Assembly (NCBI RefSeq): GCF_000009045.1 | Contig: NC_000964.3 | Location: forward strand, 1,674,001-1,738,000 | Direction: 5' to 3' | Source: Bacillus subtilis subsp. subtilis str. 168 | Lineage (GTDB): Bacteria; Bacillota; Bacilli; Bacillales; Bacillaceae | Length of the DNA: 64,000 bases | Shown: positions 1,944 through 35,747 of the stretch, piece by piece | Layout of the letters: each line of letters starts with the position of its first letter | Numbering within the stretch: position 1 is the first letter of the stretch | Program-made: the position numbers and the translations under genes | The notes under the pieces: model-generated | Seen by the model: only the letters and a program-made list of their open reading frames with translations | What the model was told of the DNA's origin: nothing | The model's database searches: none

Positions 1944-2389
<446 letters not shown>

Positions 2390-3450: not shown

Positions 3451-4218
3451 GTGAATACATTAACCGTAAAGGACATTAAAGACCGTTTGCAGGAAGTGAA
3501 GGATGCACAAGACCCATTTATTGCCCAATGCGAAAACGACCCGAGAAAAAGCGTTCAAACGCTTGTAGAGCAATGGCTTAAAAAGCAAGCGAAAGAAAAA
3601 GCGCTGAAAGAACAATGGGTGAATATGACTTCCTATGAAAGGCTGGCAAGAAACAAAGGATTTCGCTTGATTGCAGGTGTTGACGAGGTCGGCCGGGGGC
3701 CATTGGCAGGACCAGTTGTCGCCAGCGCAGTCATCCTTCCAGAGGAATGTGAAATACTTGGGCTGACAGACTCCAAAAAGCTTTCAGAGAAAAAACGCGA
3801 GGAATATTACGAGCTTATTATGAAGGAAGCACTGGCGGTCGGGATAGGAATTGTAGAAGCTACTGTGATTGATGAGATCAATATATATGAAGCTTCAAAA
3901 ATGGCAATGGTGAAAGCGATACAGGATTTGTCGGATACACCTGATTATTTGCTTGTTGACGCAATGACACTTCCGCTCGACACGGCTCAGGCGTCAATTA
4001 TAAAAGGCGATGCCAAAAGCGTGTCTATTGCGGCAGGTGCGTGTATCGCAAAAGTGACGAGGGACCGAATGATGAGCGCTTATGCCGAAACGTATCCCAT
4101 GTACGGCTTTGAAAAAAATAAAGGCTATGGGACAAAAGAACATTTGGAAGCTCTCGCTGCATACGGCCCAACTGAATTGCACCGCAAAACTTTCGCTCCT
4201 GTTCAATCTTTCAGATAA
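3451..4218 (+). CDS. rnhB: Ribonuclease HII
   Basis: AGVDEVGRGPLAGPV, LTDSKKLS and KGDAKSVSIAAG motifs; GTG start after AAGGGAG. Confidence 0.97.
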   Translation: MNTLTVKDIKDRLQEVKDAQDPFIAQCENDPRKSVQTLVEQWLKKQAKEKALKEQWVNMTSYERLARNKGFRLIAGVDEVGRGPLAGPVVASAVILPEECEILGLTDSKKLSEKKREEYYELIMKEALAVGIGIVEATVIDEINIYEASKMAMVKAIQDLSDTPDYLLVDAMTLPLDTAQASIIKGDAKSVSIAAGACIAKVTRDRMMSAYAETYPMYGFEKNKGYGTKEHLEALAAYGPTELHRKTFAPVQSFR

Positions 4219-4249
4219 ATCACCATGGACAAGGAGGCACCTTTTTAAA

Positions 4250-5980
4250 ATGAACATACGAAATGATGTGCAAAAGGCGCTGCAGCACCTTTTCGGGCGT
4301 ACAGCCGTCCCGCAGGAAACATCAAAAGTAAACGAAGCGCTAAACGGGGAGAAGCGTCTCCTCTTAGGAAAAGTGCTTCGTTTACTAGGAGATCAGCATG
4401 CCCTGATCCAAGTCGGCAATCAAACTGTTCAGGGAAAACTTGAAACTCAGCTTCGTCCTCAGGCATACTATTGGTTTTCCTACGAAAAAAAAACGGCAGA
4501 GCAAACAGGCCGTCTTCAGGTCGTTCAAAGCTTTGATCAAAATCCTAAAACCATTCAGGATGCAGCTGGCAAACTTTTAAATGCTATTTCAGTGAAGACG
4601 TCAAACGCAGCTCTCATGATGACAGGAGCGATGCTGAAAAGCAAAACACCCGTAACAGAAAATGATATCAAAACAGCTGTCCGCTGGATGGACACGCTGC
4701 CTTCGCAAGACACAAAAAAAGCAGTTGAAACGGTTCTCTTCGCTTTAAAGCGTGATCTTCCCATTCACTCCGAGATTTTGAATGGTGTTCACGCTGTGAA
4801 ATCGCCTGTTCCGTTGCATCAGCACGTATCCCAGCTGCTACAGGCAATCGACCAAAACCCTCAGCAGAGCCAAATGATGTCAAAGCTAAAGGAAGCAGTC
4901 ACGGTGCTTTTAAATAGTGAAATCGATGTCCATGCAGAACGGCTGATTGATAAGCTTATTTCTTTAACCGACAATACGAAAGCACCTTCTCCGACGAATA
5001 CAGCTGGAAGCAGGGAGCTTAGCACACCAGCTGGCTCCCCCGGAAAAGCCAGCCTGCCGATTGCAAATCACACAGCAGAACAGGGAAGCATACAAGAAGA
5101 GCCTGTTAAAACAGCAGCAGACATTCCAATTAAAGAAGCCCGCCAGCTGCTGGTGAAGCTGACGGAATCTGCTGAAAAAAACAGTCTCCAAATTGTGAAA
5201 GAAGCAGCAAATTGGATTAAAGCGGCTGCTTCATCGGGTGATAGTAAGTCACTTGCAGCTTCAGCTGTTTTACAGGCGGCACAAGTCACAGATCAGGAAG
5301 CCGAAGTCTTTTTAAAGGCTGTTCAGCAGACAGCACCCCATTTGGCGGATAAGGCAGATGTTCTTTCTTTCTTATCCAAAGTGAAAACGGCAATCGGCGC
5401 AAGGGACGAGGTTGCGTTCATTAAAGCGTTTGAACAAGGAAGCGCAGTCACATCTGGCGAAATGCAATCCATCAAGCTGGCTCTTTCTGCCTTAAGAGCA
5501 TCGCATGAGGTAGCCGAACCAGTCAAACAAGAAGCCGATCAGCTTTTTCATAAATTAAATGGCCAGCTTTTCATGCAGCAGGACCATCCATCATACAGCC
5601 AAATTGTAATGTCATTTCCGATGTTTTCGAAGTCAGGGGTTCAGGACATGACTGTTCTGTTTAAAGGAAAGAAAGAAGCGGATGGAAAGCTTGATCCTTC
5701 CCATTGCCGCCTTTTGTTTTTGCTGCAGCTTGATACACTAAAAGAAACCGTCGTTGATTGCTTGGTACAGCAAAAAGTCATGACCATTACAATAGAGACT
5801 GATTTCGAGCTGCAGGCTGCGATCGATCCGATGGTGCCCGCGCTTAAACAGGGGCTAAAGGAAATGGGGTACAGCCTTTCAGGGGTAAACGCTAAAAAAA
5901 GGGTTCACACCGAAGAAAAGGCTTCAATCGATCAATATATAACAAGTATCAGTGATCAGGAAGTGGATGTGAAAATATGA
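4250..5980 (+). CDS. ylqG: YlqG, 576 aa, function unknown; C-terminus resembles the FliK substrate-switch domain
   Basis: ATG 4250 after AAGGAGG (4231-37); long Ala/Gln/Ser-rich body; C-terminal similarity to FliK judged by eye only. Confidence 0.85.
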   Translation: MNIRNDVQKALQHLFGRTAVPQETSKVNEALNGEKRLLLGKVLRLLGDQHALIQVGNQTVQGKLETQLRPQAYYWFSYEKKTAEQTGRLQVVQSFDQNPKTIQDAAGKLLNAISVKTSNAALMMTGAMLKSKTPVTENDIKTAVRWMDTLPSQDTKKAVETVLFALKRDLPIHSEILNGVHAVKSPVPLHQHVSQLLQAIDQNPQQSQMMSKLKEAVTVLLNSEIDVHAERLIDKLISLTDNTKAPSPTNTAGSRELSTPAGSPGKASLPIANHTAEQGSIQEEPVKTAADIPIKEARQLLVKLTESAEKNSLQIVKEAANWIKAAASSGDSKSLAASAVLQAAQVTDQEAEVFLKAVQQTAPHLADKADVLSFLSKVKTAIGARDEVAFIKAFEQGSAVTSGEMQSIKLALSALRASHEVAEPVKQEADQLFHKLNGQLFMQQDHPSYSQIVMSFPMFSKSGVQDMTVLFKGKKEADGKLDPSHCRLLFLLQLDTLKETVVDCLVQQKVMTITIETDFELQAAIDPMVPALKQGLKEMGYSLSGVNAKKRVHTEEKASIDQYITSISDQEVDVKI

Positions 5981-6258
5981 AAGAGCAGACACCGATCAGA
6001 AAAGCTGTTGCTCTCCATTATGACGAACAAAAAGACAAGGCGCCGAGAGTGATTGCCACAGGGAAGGGCCATGTAGCTGACAACATTATAAAAGAAGCGA
6101 AAAAAGCAGGGGTCCCGATTCAAGAAGATCGGACCCTTGTCGAATTAATGCGCCATTTGACGGTAGATGATCAAATTCCTGAAGCTCTTTATGAAACGGT
6201 AGCCGAGATTTTTTCATTCATTTACAAATTGGACGAAAGCGTAAAAAACAAAAAATAG
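5977..6258 (+). CDS. ylqH: YlqH, free-standing homolog of the FlhB C-terminal cytoplasmic fragment (93 aa)
   Basis: AVALHYDEQKDKAPRVIATG aligns with FlhB [20 protein letters not shown] of this window; ATGA overlap with ylqG. Confidence 0.9.
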   Translation: MKEQTPIRKAVALHYDEQKDKAPRVIATGKGHVADNIIKEAKKAGVPIQEDRTLVELMRHLTVDDQIPEALYETVAEIFSFIYKLDESVKNKK

Positions 6259-31542: not shown

Positions 31543-31812
31543 GTGAGTTCAGAATTTGTAATTTCTATGGCGGAAAAAGCCGTATACGTAACGCTGATGA
31601 TCAGCGGGCCATTATTGGCTATTGCTTTACTGGTCGGTTTAATTGTCAGCATATTTCAGGCGACAACTCAAATCCAGGAACAGACTTTGGCGTTTATTCC
31701 GAAAATCGTGGCGGTTCTCCTGGCTCTCATTTTTTTTGGTCCGTGGATGCTGTCGACGATTCTTTCATTTACAACAGAGCTGTTTTCTAATTTAAATCGT
31801 TTTGCAGGGTAA
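31543..31812 (+). CDS. fliQ: Flagellar export gate protein FliQ (89 aa)
   Basis: GLIVSIFQATTQIQEQTLAFIPK; GTG 31543 after AGGTG. Confidence 0.98.
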   Translation: MSSEFVISMAEKAVYVTLMISGPLLAIALLVGLIVSIFQATTQIQEQTLAFIPKIVAVLLALIFFGPWMLSTILSFTTELFSNLNRFAG

Positions 31813-31819
31813 TGTAGAG

Positions 31820-32599
31820 ATGAATTCAATTATTGACTTATTTCCTGCTTTTTTATTGGTTTTTATTAGAATCTCTGCTTTTTTTGTAACGATTCCGCTA
31901 TTTGGACATCGAAATGTGCCAGCTGTTCATCGCATAGGTTTTGCTTTTTTTCTTGCGGTCATTTGTTTCAGCACCATTGATAAACCGCCCTCTTTGGAGA
32001 TAGATGAGCACTATATGCTTTTGGCGTTTAAAGAAGCTTTGGTCGGCCTATGTCTGGGTTTAATTGCTTATATGATGATTGCCGCAGTGCAGATTGCCGG
32101 CTCGTTTATTGATTTTCAAATGGGATTTTCAATAGCAAACGTTATTGATCCGCAAACCGGTGCACAAAGTCCGTTGATTGGCCAGTTTATCTATACGATG
32201 GCACTTTTGTTTATGCTGAGTGTCAATGCCCACCATTTGTTGCTGGATGGTATTTACTACAGCTTTCAGTATATTTCAGTTGATCAGGCATTTCCGAATT
32301 TCGGCGATGAAAAGTTTGCCTATTTTATTGCGAAAAGCTTTAATGCAATGTTTATTATCGCTTTTCAAATGTCAGCGCCGGTTGTGGCCAGTTTGTTTCT
32401 AGTTGATTTAGCATTAGGTATCGTGGCTCGAACTGTTCCGCAGTTAAATGTATTTGTGGTCGGTCTGCCTTTAAAGATCGCTGTCAGTTTCATTATGCTC
32501 ATTGTATGTATGTCCGTTATCTTCGTCGTTGTCCGGAATGTTTTCAGTTTAACGATTGAAACGATGCGGAATCTTTTAGCATTGGTCGGTGTTTCTTAA
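31820..32599 (+). CDS. fliR: Flagellar export gate protein FliR (259 aa)
   Basis: AGSFIDFQMGFS and ARTVPQLNVFVVGLPLK; hydrophobic; ATG 31820. Confidence 0.97.
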   Translation: MNSIIDLFPAFLLVFIRISAFFVTIPLFGHRNVPAVHRIGFAFFLAVICFSTIDKPPSLEIDEHYMLLAFKEALVGLCLGLIAYMMIAAVQIAGSFIDFQMGFSIANVIDPQTGAQSPLIGQFIYTMALLFMLSVNAHHLLLDGIYYSFQYISVDQAFPNFGDEKFAYFIAKSFNAMFIIAFQMSAPVVASLFLVDLALGIVARTVPQLNVFVVGLPLKIAVSFIMLIVCMSVIFVVVRNVFSLTIETMRNLLALVGVS

Positions 32600-33681
32600 T
32601 GAAGCTTAGAGTTGACCTGCAGTTTTTTGCGGGAGAGAAGACAGAAAAAGCCACTCCGAAAAAACGGAAGGATACGCGAAAAAAAGGGCAGGTAGCCAAA
32701 AGCTCGGATGTCAATACCGCCGTTTCTTTACTGGTAATATTCCTTTCGCTTATTGCAATTGGTCCGTATATGAGAGACAGGCTGCTGTCATTCATAGAAA
32801 CATTTTATACCGAATCGCTCACAATGAAGCTCTCAGAATCAAATGTGCATACATTGTTTGTCAGCTTATTAAAGGATATGGGCATGATACTCGCACCGAT
32901 CTTGCTTGTTGCTCTTGTTGCAGGAGTCGTAAGCAACTATATGCAGGTTGGGTTCTTGTTTTCTGCTGAAGTGATACAGCCTAAGCTTGAAAAACTGGAT
33001 CCGATCAAAGGCTTTAAACGAATATACAGTATGAGGGCGATTGTAGAGCTGATTAAATCAATTTTGAAAATCGTAGTCGTCGGTTTTGCGGCTTTTGCTG
33101 TGCTTTGGCTGCATTATGGAGAAATTCTCCGGCTTCCTCTCCTGACACCCGAAGAGGCACTTTCTTTCGTTTCAAAACTCACTTTGTGGATGGGACTAAG
33201 CGGTGCAGGTGCATTGTTGATTCTTGCTGGTCTCGACTATTTATATCAGAGATTTGACTATGAGAAAAATATCAAAATGTCAAAACAAGATATAAAAGAT
33301 GAGTACAAAAAATCTGAAGGAGACCCGATTATCAAGTCTAAAATTAAACAAAGACAGCGGGAAATGGCGATGAGGCGGATGATGCAGGAAGTTCCAAAAG
33401 CAGATGTCATTATCACAAACCCGACTCACTATGCGATTGCTTTGAAATATGATGAAGAAAAAATGGACGCACCTTATATTGTTGCAAAAGGCGTCGACCA
33501 CCTTGCGTTAAAAATCAGGAAAATTGCTAAAGAGCATGATGTCATGATGGTAGAAAACAGACCGCTTGCCCGTGCGTTATATGATCAAGTGGAAATTGAC
33601 CAGGCAGTGCCGGAAGAATTTTTTAAAGTTTTAGCAGAAATTCTGGCTTACGTATATAAAACAAAACAAAAAGTATATTGA
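32599..33681 (+). CDS. flhB: Flagellar export switch protein FlhB
   Basis: EKTEKATPKK, MSKQDIKDEYKKSEGDP and NPTH autocleavage motif (33418-29). Confidence 0.99.
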   Translation: MKLRVDLQFFAGEKTEKATPKKRKDTRKKGQVAKSSDVNTAVSLLVIFLSLIAIGPYMRDRLLSFIETFYTESLTMKLSESNVHTLFVSLLKDMGMILAPILLVALVAGVVSNYMQVGFLFSAEVIQPKLEKLDPIKGFKRIYSMRAIVELIKSILKIVVVGFAAFAVLWLHYGEILRLPLLTPEEALSFVSKLTLWMGLSGAGALLILAGLDYLYQRFDYEKNIKMSKQDIKDEYKKSEGDPIIKSKIKQRQREMAMRRMMQEVPKADVIITNPTHYAIALKYDEEKMDAPYIVAKGVDHLALKIRKIAKEHDVMMVENRPLARALYDQVEIDQAVPEEFFKVLAEILAYVYKTKQKVY

Positions 33682-33713: not shown

Positions 33714-35747
33714 ATGTCAACAAGAGATTTATCCGTTTTAATAAGTGTTGTCCTCATTGTGGCGATGCTGGTGATTCCATTTCCTCCATGGCTGTTAAGT
33801 ATTTTGATCATTATTAATATTTCTCTTGCGTTGATCGTGCTTCTCACCACAATGAATATGCAGGAAGCGCTTCAGTTTTCGATTTTTCCGTCACTGTTGC
33901 TGCTTTTGACCCTATTTCGTTTGGGCTTGAACGTCTCAACTACCCGTTCAATTCTTTCACACGGTGAGGGAGGTAAAGTCGTCGAGACTTTCGGAAATTT
34001 CGTTGTCGGCGGAAATGTATTAGTTGGACTCGTTGTATTTATCATCCTTATTATTATTCAGTTTATCGTCATTACAAAAGGTGCTGAACGTGTTTCCGAG
34101 GTTGCAGCAAGGTTTACGCTGGACGCAATGCCGGGGAAGCAGATGAGTATTGATGCTGATTTAAACGCAGGGATGATTACCGAACAGGAAGCGAAGCATC
34201 GCCGCGAAAAAGTGGCAAGAGAAGCAGACTTTTATGGAGCAATGGACGGTGCCAGTAAATTTGTAAAAGGTGACGCCATTGCCGGAATCATCATTGTGAT
34301 GATCAATATTATTTTCGGAATCGTGATCGGAATGCTTCAGCAGGGCATGTCCATTCAAGAAGCTGCTTCACACTTTACGATGCTGACTGTAGGGGATGGA
34401 ATTGTTTCGCAAATCCCGGCACTGTTAATTTCTACGGCTACGGGTATTGTGGTCACAAGAGCTGCATCTGAAGGAAACTTAGGGCATGACATTACAGGCC
34501 AGCTGTTTGCGTATCCAAAGCTTTTATACGTCGCAGCAGCTACGATCATGCTTTTAGGTATTTTCACTCCGATCGGCATCCTTCTGACGGGGCCGCTTGC
34601 GGGATTGCTTGCTTTTGGCGCATATACACTATCTAAATCAGGTAAGGAAAAAGAAGAAGTGGATGAGATTCTTGAGGAAGAGGCTGAGGTGGACGAGCTT
34701 AAAAGCCCTGAAAGTGTTGTTCAGCTTCTGCATATAGATCCGATAGAATTTGAGTTTGGATATGGCCTGATACCGCTTGCTGATGCCAATCAAGGCGGTG
34801 ATTTATTAGACCGAATTGTTATGATACGCCGTCAGTTGGCTTTGGAACTCGGGCTTGTCATTCCTGTCGTGCGAATCAGAGATAATATAGCGTTGCAGCC
34901 TAATGAATACCGATTGAAAATTAAAGGAAACGAAGTAGCAAAAGGCGAGCTGTTGCTTGATCATTATTTAGCGATGTCGCCTACTCCTGAGGACGATCTC
35001 ATTGAAGGGATTGAAACAGTGGAGCCTTCATTCGGACTGCCGGCTAAATGGATTAGCGAAGCGGTAAAGGATGAAGCCGACATGCTTGGTTATACAGTAG
35101 TTGATCCTGCATCAGTCGTTTCAACGCATATTACGGAGAAAATTAAGCAGCATGCCCACGAATTGATCGGAAGGCAGGAGACAAAACAGCTGATCGATCA
35201 CTTGAAAGAATCGTATCCAGTCCTGGTTGAAGAGGTTACGCCGAATCCATTGTCTGTCGGTGATATTCAGAAAGTGCTTGCTAAGCTTTTAAAAGAAAAA
35301 GTTTCAATTCGAAACTTAGTAACGATTTTTGAAACACTTGCTGACTATGGGAAATTAACAACAGATTCTGATCTCTTGACAGAGTATACAAGACAAGCGC
35401 TTGCTAAACAAATTACAGCCCAGTTTGCCAAAGAAAATGAAGTGTTGAAGGTTGTTACTTGTTCCGGCCGTGTAGAAAAAGCAATAGCAGACGGTGTGCA
35501 GCAGACGGAACACGGGAACTATTTATCACTTGAACCAGATATTTCAGAAAGTATAGTGCGCTCTGTCGCCAAAGAAGCTGAACAGCTCTCATTACGTCAG
35601 GAAACCGCGATTCTTCTTTGCTCGCCGCCTGTCAGAATGTATGTGAAGCAGCTACTGGAACGGTACTTCCCTGATCTTCCGGTACTCTCTTATAACGAAC
35701 TTGAGGCGAATGTTGAGGTACAAAGCATTGGAGTGGTGGATATTTAA
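33714..35747 (+). CDS. flhA: Flagellar export protein FlhA
   Basis: ERVSEVAARFTLDAMPGKQMSIDADL FHIPEP motif. Confidence 0.99.
   Translation: MSTRDLSVLISVVLIVAMLVIPFPPWLLSILIIINISLALIVLLTTMNMQEALQFSIFPSLLLLLTLFRLGLNVSTTRSILSHGEGGKVVETFGNFVVGGNVLVGLVVFIILIIIQFIVITKGAERVSEVAARFTLDAMPGKQMSIDADLNAGMITEQEAKHRREKVAREADFYGAMDGASKFVKGDAIAGIIIVMINIIFGIVIGMLQQGMSIQEAASHFTMLTVGDGIVSQIPALLISTATGIVVTRAASEGNLGHDITGQLFAYPKLLYVAAATIMLLGIFTPIGILLTGPLAGLLAFGAYTLSKSGKEKEEVDEILEEEAEVDELKSPESVVQLLHIDPIEFEFGYGLIPLADANQGGDLLDRIVMIRRQLALELGLVIPVVRIRDNIALQPNEYRLKIKGNEVAKGELLLDHYLAMSPTPEDDLIEGIETVEPSFGLPAKWISEAVKDEADMLGYTVVDPASVVSTHITEKIKQHAHELIGRQETKQLIDHLKESYPVLVEEVTPNPLSVGDIQKVLAKLLKEKVSIRNLVTIFETLADYGKLTTDSDLLTEYTRQALAKQITAQFAKENEVLKVVTCSGRVEKAIADGVQQTEHGNYLSLEPDISESIVRSVAKEAEQLSLRQETAILLCSPPVRMYVKQLLERYFPDLPVLSYNELEANVEVQSIGVVDI

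Follow-up and report, generated by a model that had tools for sequence, protein, structure and literature searches.

The N-terminal extension carried by ribosomal protein L27 must be removed before the L27 tail can enter the peptidyl-transferase centre. The protease that removes it in Firmicutes and related phyla is Prp, in Bacillus subtilis YsxB, a cysteine protease of MEROPS family C108 encoded between rplU and rpmA, elsewhere in the genome than the region analysed here. Cleavage of the L27 leader, which has the consensus MLxx(D/N)LQ(F/L)F'A (the prime marks the scissile bond), is experimentally established, and Prp also cuts two non-ribosomal proteins of phage 80alpha with L27-like N-terminal leaders, the scaffold protein gp46 (NLQFF'ADQS) and the capsid protein gp47 (NLQHF'ASNN), whose P' sides are unlike that of L27 (Hotinger, Gallagher and May, Antibiotics 2022;11:1109; PMC9405229; hereafter Hotinger et al., 2022). 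The same review compared L27 of B. subtilis with FlhB, an inner-membrane protein of the flagellar export gate, and proposed a “double duty” for Prp, crediting the idea of FlhB as a Prp substrate to E. Wall (PhD thesis, VCU 2015). FlhB and its relative SctU are known to be processed at another site, the NPTH motif in the cytoplasmic domain at the C-terminus, where autocatalytic, family-wide cleavage governs substrate switching; the putative N-terminal cut would differ in being enzyme-dependent and lineage-restricted. Here we analyse the flhB gene in a 64-kb stretch of the B. subtilis subsp. subtilis str. 168 chromosome (NC_000964.3, positions 1,674,001 to 1,738,000; the whole 64,000 nucleotides are referred to as the window and coordinates are counted from its first nucleotide). 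An original prediction made from this DNA had noted that FlhB opens with a near copy of the L27 leader, suggested that Prp may cut it between F10 and A11, and believed this to be undescribed; the last point was mistaken, as FlhB as a Prp substrate is already published as a hypothesis (Hotinger et al., 2022; Wall, 2015). Newly added here are a survey of about 500 FlhBs, against the 14 species compared by hand in the 2022 review, the absence of the motif from all 72 FlhBs sampled in other phyla, evidence of selection at the peptide level, a motif-less clostridial clade, and a lead from natural FliR-FlhB fusions. Like the 2022 hypothesis, the present analysis is sequence-based.

The flhB gene (32599..33681, + strand) is a 360-amino-acid open reading frame (ORF) with the N-terminus MKLRVDLQFFAGEKTEKATPKK, and its first 14 codons (32599-32640) translate as MKLRVDLQFFAGEK. 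This is the N-terminus given for B. subtilis FlhB (P35538) in Table 3 of Hotinger et al. (2022), who also list B. subtilis Prp (P26942). L27 of B. subtilis starts MLRLDLQFFASKK in the PDB (3j9w_BZ plus 29 further entries), so that FlhB, MKLRVDLQFF'AGEKTEK, can be set against L27, MLRLDLQFF'ASKK. The segments LRVDLQFFA and LRLDLQFFA are identical at eight of nine residues, bearing out the near copy claimed in the original prediction, and over P7-P1 (RVDLQFF in FlhB, RLDLQFF in L27) the sole difference is a change from L to V at P6. MKLRVDLQFF'A thus has the form xx(D/N)LQ(F/L)F'A of Prp (C108) substrates, and in both proteins the match is very N-terminal, with a leader of 9 residues in L27 and 10 in FlhB. 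From this likeness and from the conservation described below, residues 1-10 of FlhB (MKLRVDLQFF; 32599..32628, +) are predicted to be a Prp-type propeptide, and the L27 and phage 80alpha sites (Hotinger et al., 2022, Tables 1-3) place the predicted scissile bond F10-A11 at the codons ttt gcg (32626..32631, +). The predicted mature protein would comprise A11-Y360, encoded together with the stop codon at 32629..33681 (+), and would start AGEKTEKATPKK, with the conserved KTE anchor of FlhB close behind (32638-32646, +).

The resemblance is too close to be attributed to chance. Given the amino-acid composition of the genes in the window, LRxDLQFFA would appear at any single chosen position with a probability of 8e-11, which corresponds to about 1e-6 expected N-termini of this kind per proteome of 4,200 proteins, and LQFFA occurs only once across the six reading frames of the window (0.05 expected). 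A mis-annotated flhB start was likewise rejected, there being no alternative in-frame ATG, GTG or TTG before the KTE anchor, an ATG that overlaps the fliR stop codon, and a peptide that is kept in hundreds of orthologues. The protein as a whole is an ordinary FlhB; it matches NCBIfam TIGR00328 (TIGR00328 / PF01312 family) over residues 13-358 with 456.4 bits against a model cut-off of 349.25, and FlhB chains in the PDB match it with E-values of 1e-61 to 1e-74. The TIGR00328 profile begins only at residue 13, and PDB chains of enterobacterial and Vibrio FlhB do not align until residue 12-13 of the query, having DKTE already at chain residue 8; residues 1-12 are therefore an add-on outside the family core. 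That enterobacterial FlhB lacks the extension was also part of the original prediction, and E. coli FlhB has been reported not to extend past the putative site (Hotinger et al., 2022).

The motif is strongly conserved in Bacillaceae and in spirochaetes. Among the best 120 matches to FlhB, all from Bacillaceae (64-95% identity), 119 have (D/N)(L/I)Q(F/Y/L)F(A/S)GEKTE, with A at P1' in 86 of them and S in 33, and the first three to six residues ahead of the motif vary freely in sequence and length. The peptide stays the same although each of its motif codons differs synonymously from lineage to lineage (Leu CTG/TTA/TTG/CTT/CTC/CTA, Asp GAC/GAT, Gln CAG/CAA, Phe TTT/TTC, Ala GCG/GCA/GCT/GCC), so that purifying selection acts on the motif at the peptide level. 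In spirochaetes the corresponding sequence, [IVM][HD]LQWF-A[AP]EDEG-RTE, is present in every one of the 117 FlhBs whose KTE-type anchor can be recognised among the best 120 matches to a spirochaete query, and the stretch ahead of it is again variable and usually longer than in Bacillaceae. The FlhB chain in PDB 12du reads ...PLDFF-SADDEGRTE. When Bacillaceae and spirochaete FlhBs (35-40% identity) are aligned together, F10 is among only 35 columns without any variation, and conservation of Q8 reaches at least 90%.

To place these groups in a wider context, we used a sample that is independent of the N-terminus: one genome per species was scanned for the C-terminal pattern ADV[IV][IV]xNPxH[YF], giving 120 flhB loci from many phyla, and the motif was scored as Q[FLWMYR][FL][AGS] no more than 16 residues upstream of the KTE anchor. 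It was found in 16/26 Bacillota and in two of three Spirochaetota (the third is degenerate, MSF-AAEDEG), and in none of the 72 FlhBs from other phyla, namely Pseudomonadota, Campylobacterota, Actinomycetota, Nitrospirota, Planctomycetota, Verrucomicrobiota, Acidobacteriota, Ignavibacteria, Chloroflexota, Desulfobacterota and Myxococcota, which usually start M-A-E-D-S-x-x-E-KTE. Fisher's exact test on motif by phylum gives p = 9e-13 for loci that are phylogenetically non-independent, and the tree of the sampled FlhBs requires at least five changes of motif state. With the motif in 18/29 Bacillota plus Spirochaetota and 0/72 others, it is confined, in this sample, which has no Thermotogae or Synergistetes, to phyla reported to encode Prp, the presence of Prp being taken from phylum-level statements in the literature. 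Of the 143 full-length representatives nearest the query in a library clustered at 50% identity, 39 carry the motif. Two apparent counter-examples in metagenome-assembled genomes (MAGs) were rejected as mislabelled: a contig of a ‘Betaproteobacteria bacterium’ MAG (L121, JBLNCL010000003.1) follows the Bacillota in its fla/che gene order (fliY, flbD, sigD and rpsB), and the FlhB on an ‘uncultured Bacteroides’ MAG contig (L057) nests within a Lachnospiraceae clade.

The predicted cut would leave three residues ahead of KTE in Bacillaceae. FlhBs without the motif mostly start with MA and have a median of seven residues before KTE, several of them reading MAGE-KTE, so the predicted mature end AGEKTE would resemble the start of these naturally short proteins, M-AGE-KTE. 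L27 offers a parallel, in that the long form after cleavage equals the short form after removal of Met, and the predicted product of FlhB likewise resembles the short-form FlhBs. Residues 1-28 of FlhB are not resolved in the cryo-electron microscopy structure of FliPQR-FlhB, in which the N-terminus was followed to the cytoplasmic face, close to FlhB-CN and the gate entrance (Kuhlen et al., 2020; PMC7064499). An AlphaFold2 model of the B. subtilis protein has long helices at residues 36-73, 80-117, 145-171 and 184-224, as expected of the N-terminal transmembrane domain of FlhB, the first of them beginning behind the leader, and a mean predicted local distance difference test (pLDDT) score of 54 at residues 1-10. 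By analogy with the solved complex, the leader would be a flexible, exposed segment on the cytoplasmic side, which the low model confidence fits.

We consider it reasonably probable, judging by these comparisons, that residues 1-10 of FlhB are a propeptide cut by Prp at F10-A11. FlhB would be made with a ten-residue N-terminal propeptide, MKLRVDLQFF, that copies the Prp recognition sequence; Prp would bind P7-P1 (RVDLQFF) and cut between F10 and A11; and the mature protein would start AGEKTEK, much as motif-less FlhBs do once Met1 has been removed. A role for the propeptide may be proposed from the L27 case, for example that it keeps the N-terminal region off FlhB-CN and the gate entrance until FlhB has been assembled. 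The P' side of FlhB, AGEK or SGEK, differs from the A(S/H)KK of L27. The side of the bond that is recognised is P7-P1: the peptide Ac-KLNLQFF-CMK, which has P7-P1 only, fills the active site of S. aureus Prp (Hotinger et al., 2022). The P' side is permissive, as gp46 and gp47 are cut despite P' sides unlike L27, and Prp therefore tolerates acidic or neutral residues there, as in AGEK. The phage proteins, also named in the original prediction, differ from FlhB in having leaders of 13-14 residues and in belonging to a phage that exploits a host enzyme; FlhB would be a second host substrate. We infer that Prp is the enzyme, that cleavage takes place at all and that it is functionally important; for L27 cleavage is an experimental fact and for FlhB a prediction. 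FlhB as a Prp substrate is plausible, and it is unproven. Accordingly, the processing event put forward in the original prediction is reasonable and in part supported, as all of the comparative tests run here fit it. Its further step, which ties assembly of the flagellum to ribosome biogenesis, is speculative and goes beyond the data.

Several observations weigh against cleavage by Prp. Ten of the 26 sampled Bacillota FlhBs lack the motif (L017, L022, L063, L069, L071, L089, L107, L114, L115 and L118), though Firmicutes are reported to have Prp. Most of the motif-less Bacillota FlhBs form one well-supported clostridial clade of nine tree rows (Acetobacterium, Ruminococcus, Butyricicoccus, some Lachnospiraceae and Oscillospiraceae, and two unassigned labels) and open with MAGE-KTE or a like sequence; one Heliobacteriaceae and one Oscillospiraceae FlhB outside this clade are motif-less as well. 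Neither the function of FlhB nor the presence of Prp therefore requires the motif, and the leader, together with any dependence on Prp, must be specific to lineages within the Bacillota. Serine at P1' in 33/119 Bacillaceae FlhBs, and glycine in one Paenibacillus, depart from L27, in which this residue is nearly always alanine. Occurrence of the protease was assigned at the level of phyla; for the present genome it is taken from the B. subtilis-like identification and the literature, and the 64-kb window contains no Prp or L27 signature. A full-text literature search on FlhB, L27 and Prp among 8.4 million papers and preprints returned the 2022 review alone, and no proteomic, N-terminal sequencing or in vitro cleavage data for FlhB from any organism. 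B. subtilis N-terminomics papers contained nothing on the FlhB N-terminus, a 2026 in situ study of the Borrelia export apparatus, of which we take PDB 12du to be the deposition, makes no mention of the N-terminus or of Prp, and in a 2026 mBio paper on the FlhB switch we found no experimental evidence for N-terminal processing.

Instead of being removed, the extension might be a permanent functional part of FlhB that contacts, for example, FlhB-CN, FliQ or FlhA at the gate entrance, its likeness to L27 then being convergence. Elsewhere, the N-terminal region of FlhB matters for function, and the absence of the motif from many Prp-containing Clostridia would sit comfortably with such a role. However, convergence would have to account for an eight-of-nine match to the L27 leader of the same organism, at the chance expectation of about 1e-6 given above, and for the way in which the variable and conserved positions of the FlhB leader mirror the L27 consensus MLxx(D/N)LQ(F/L)F'A. 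It would also have to account for the restriction of the motif, in our sample, to phyla reported to encode Prp, and for the spirochaetes, which like some Thermotogae and Tenericutes encode Prp alongside a short L27 (Hotinger et al., 2022), and so keep the protease without an L27 substrate while also keeping the FlhB motif. We therefore regard a permanent role as unlikely.

Alternatively, the motif could be a docking handle through which Prp acts as a chaperone, escorting nascent FlhB to the membrane or gate, with the extension retained or only slowly removed. There is precedent in the proposal that Prp is an L27 chaperone; its binding is tight (Km of about 3 uM), the peptide released by cleavage is an inhibitor, and growth is impaired with pre-cleaved L27 (Hotinger et al., 2022, section 3.3.2). 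The conservation data demand recognition, not in themselves hydrolysis. The best conserved part of the FlhB motif, though, is P2-P1-P1' (F-F'A), the scissile residues of L27 and the phage proteins, with F10 invariant and P1' either A or S, and one would expect a catalytically competent Prp bound at this site to cleave it, just as gp46 and gp47 are cut despite their unrelated downstream sequences. Escort without prompt cleavage is in our view quite improbable. A constraint at the nucleic-acid level (coupling of fliR and flhB, mRNA structure or the ribosome-binding region) or chance resemblance can be dismissed as hardly credible, for although flhB overlaps fliR and lacks a strong Shine-Dalgarno sequence upstream, every motif codon varies synonymously with the peptide kept, which led us to reject an mRNA-level or translational-coupling constraint, and a motif with so low a chance expectation recurs in hundreds of FlhBs.

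Returning to Prp cleavage, a broader version of this reading can be offered only tentatively and is more doubtful than cleavage itself: FlhB may be a genuine, ancient Prp client for which the cut is needed, this being the reason why Prp is kept in spirochaetes and some Thermotogae, with the propeptide holding the N-terminus off the gate entrance until assembly and with clostridial FliR-FlhB fusions being split at a junction F-A. The comparison published in 2022 had already reached into these groups, with an alignment of the start of FlhB from four Firmicutes, five spirochaetes, three Thermotogae and two enterobacteria (Hotinger et al., 2022, Table 3, section 3.2). The fusions (NCBIfam NF009411; Clostridium, Caloramator, Oxobacter and relatives) were found through the representative search, outside the window (P0195, P0225, P0228, P0257 and P0404-P0520). 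In the 116 proteins examined the junction reads P-[LFV]-[IVLM]-[IFL]-[IL]-F-A-S-[ED]-[DE]-KTE, with F (90/116) and A (106/116) among its most conserved positions. This F-A lies 4-5 residues before KTE, nearly the spacing of the F'A in free-standing FlhB, but the (D/N)LQ of the latter is replaced by hydrophobic residues. Going by the junction sequence, F-A could be a split site of the fusions. Kuhlen et al. (2020) raised the possibility that native fusions depend on proteolytic separation and named no candidate site, and the C. tetani site appears in the 2022 review without mention of the fusion. Three further loci in the sample (L032, L094 and L108) were rejected as FliR-FlhB fusions, as their upstream stop-free frames are open frames in high-GC DNA.

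If the ancient-client reading is true, it would answer the question of Kuhlen et al. (2020) as to how native fusions work. If Prp does mature FlhB, a protease whose only known roles are in ribosome maturation and phage capsid processing would also govern how the flagellar type III export gate is assembled in Bacillota, spirochaetes and Thermotogae, which would explain why spirochaetes retain Prp without an L27 leader and would give a well-studied protein a second step of processing. Prp inhibitors, pursued as narrow-spectrum antibacterials, would in that case also be potential anti-motility agents. These implications of Prp-dependent FlhB maturation have already been argued in print (Hotinger et al., 2022), and the present check strengthens the comparative basis of the published hypothesis.

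The flhB gene stands in the order fliO/Z-fliP-fliQ-fliR-flhB-flhA-flhF, as assigned with NCBIfam, and these genes belong to the fla/che operon of an organism from the B. subtilis group; the top-listed FlhB relatives are Bacillus proteins with 95% identity. Upstream, fliR (31802..32599, +; TIGR01400, 239 bits) is separate from flhB and in a different frame, so there is no FliR-FlhB fusion here, and its stop codon and the flhB ATG share one base (TAATG, 32597-32601). This overlap, in the absence of a strong Shine-Dalgarno sequence upstream of the ATG, suggests that flhB translation is coupled to that of fliR. Downstream lies the export-apparatus gene flhA (33714..35747, +; TIGR01398, 956 bits). 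Within flhB, the autocleavage and substrate-switch site NPTH (N274-H277; 33418..33429, +) occurs in the context ITNPTHYA and lines up with the NPTH in solved FlhB C-domains, and its columns are invariant in the alignment of Bacillaceae and spirochaete FlhBs. Far upstream of the flagellar operon, the window also encodes a 93-amino-acid stand-alone paralogue of the FlhB C-terminal domain (5977-6258, +; TIGR00789 ‘FlhB-like’, 137 bits), which comes directly after a 632-amino-acid ORF (4082-5980) with no NCBIfam match. The sole Rfam family at gathering score in the window is a ribosomal protein L19 leader (RF00556, 49 bits) at 1981-2022 (+).

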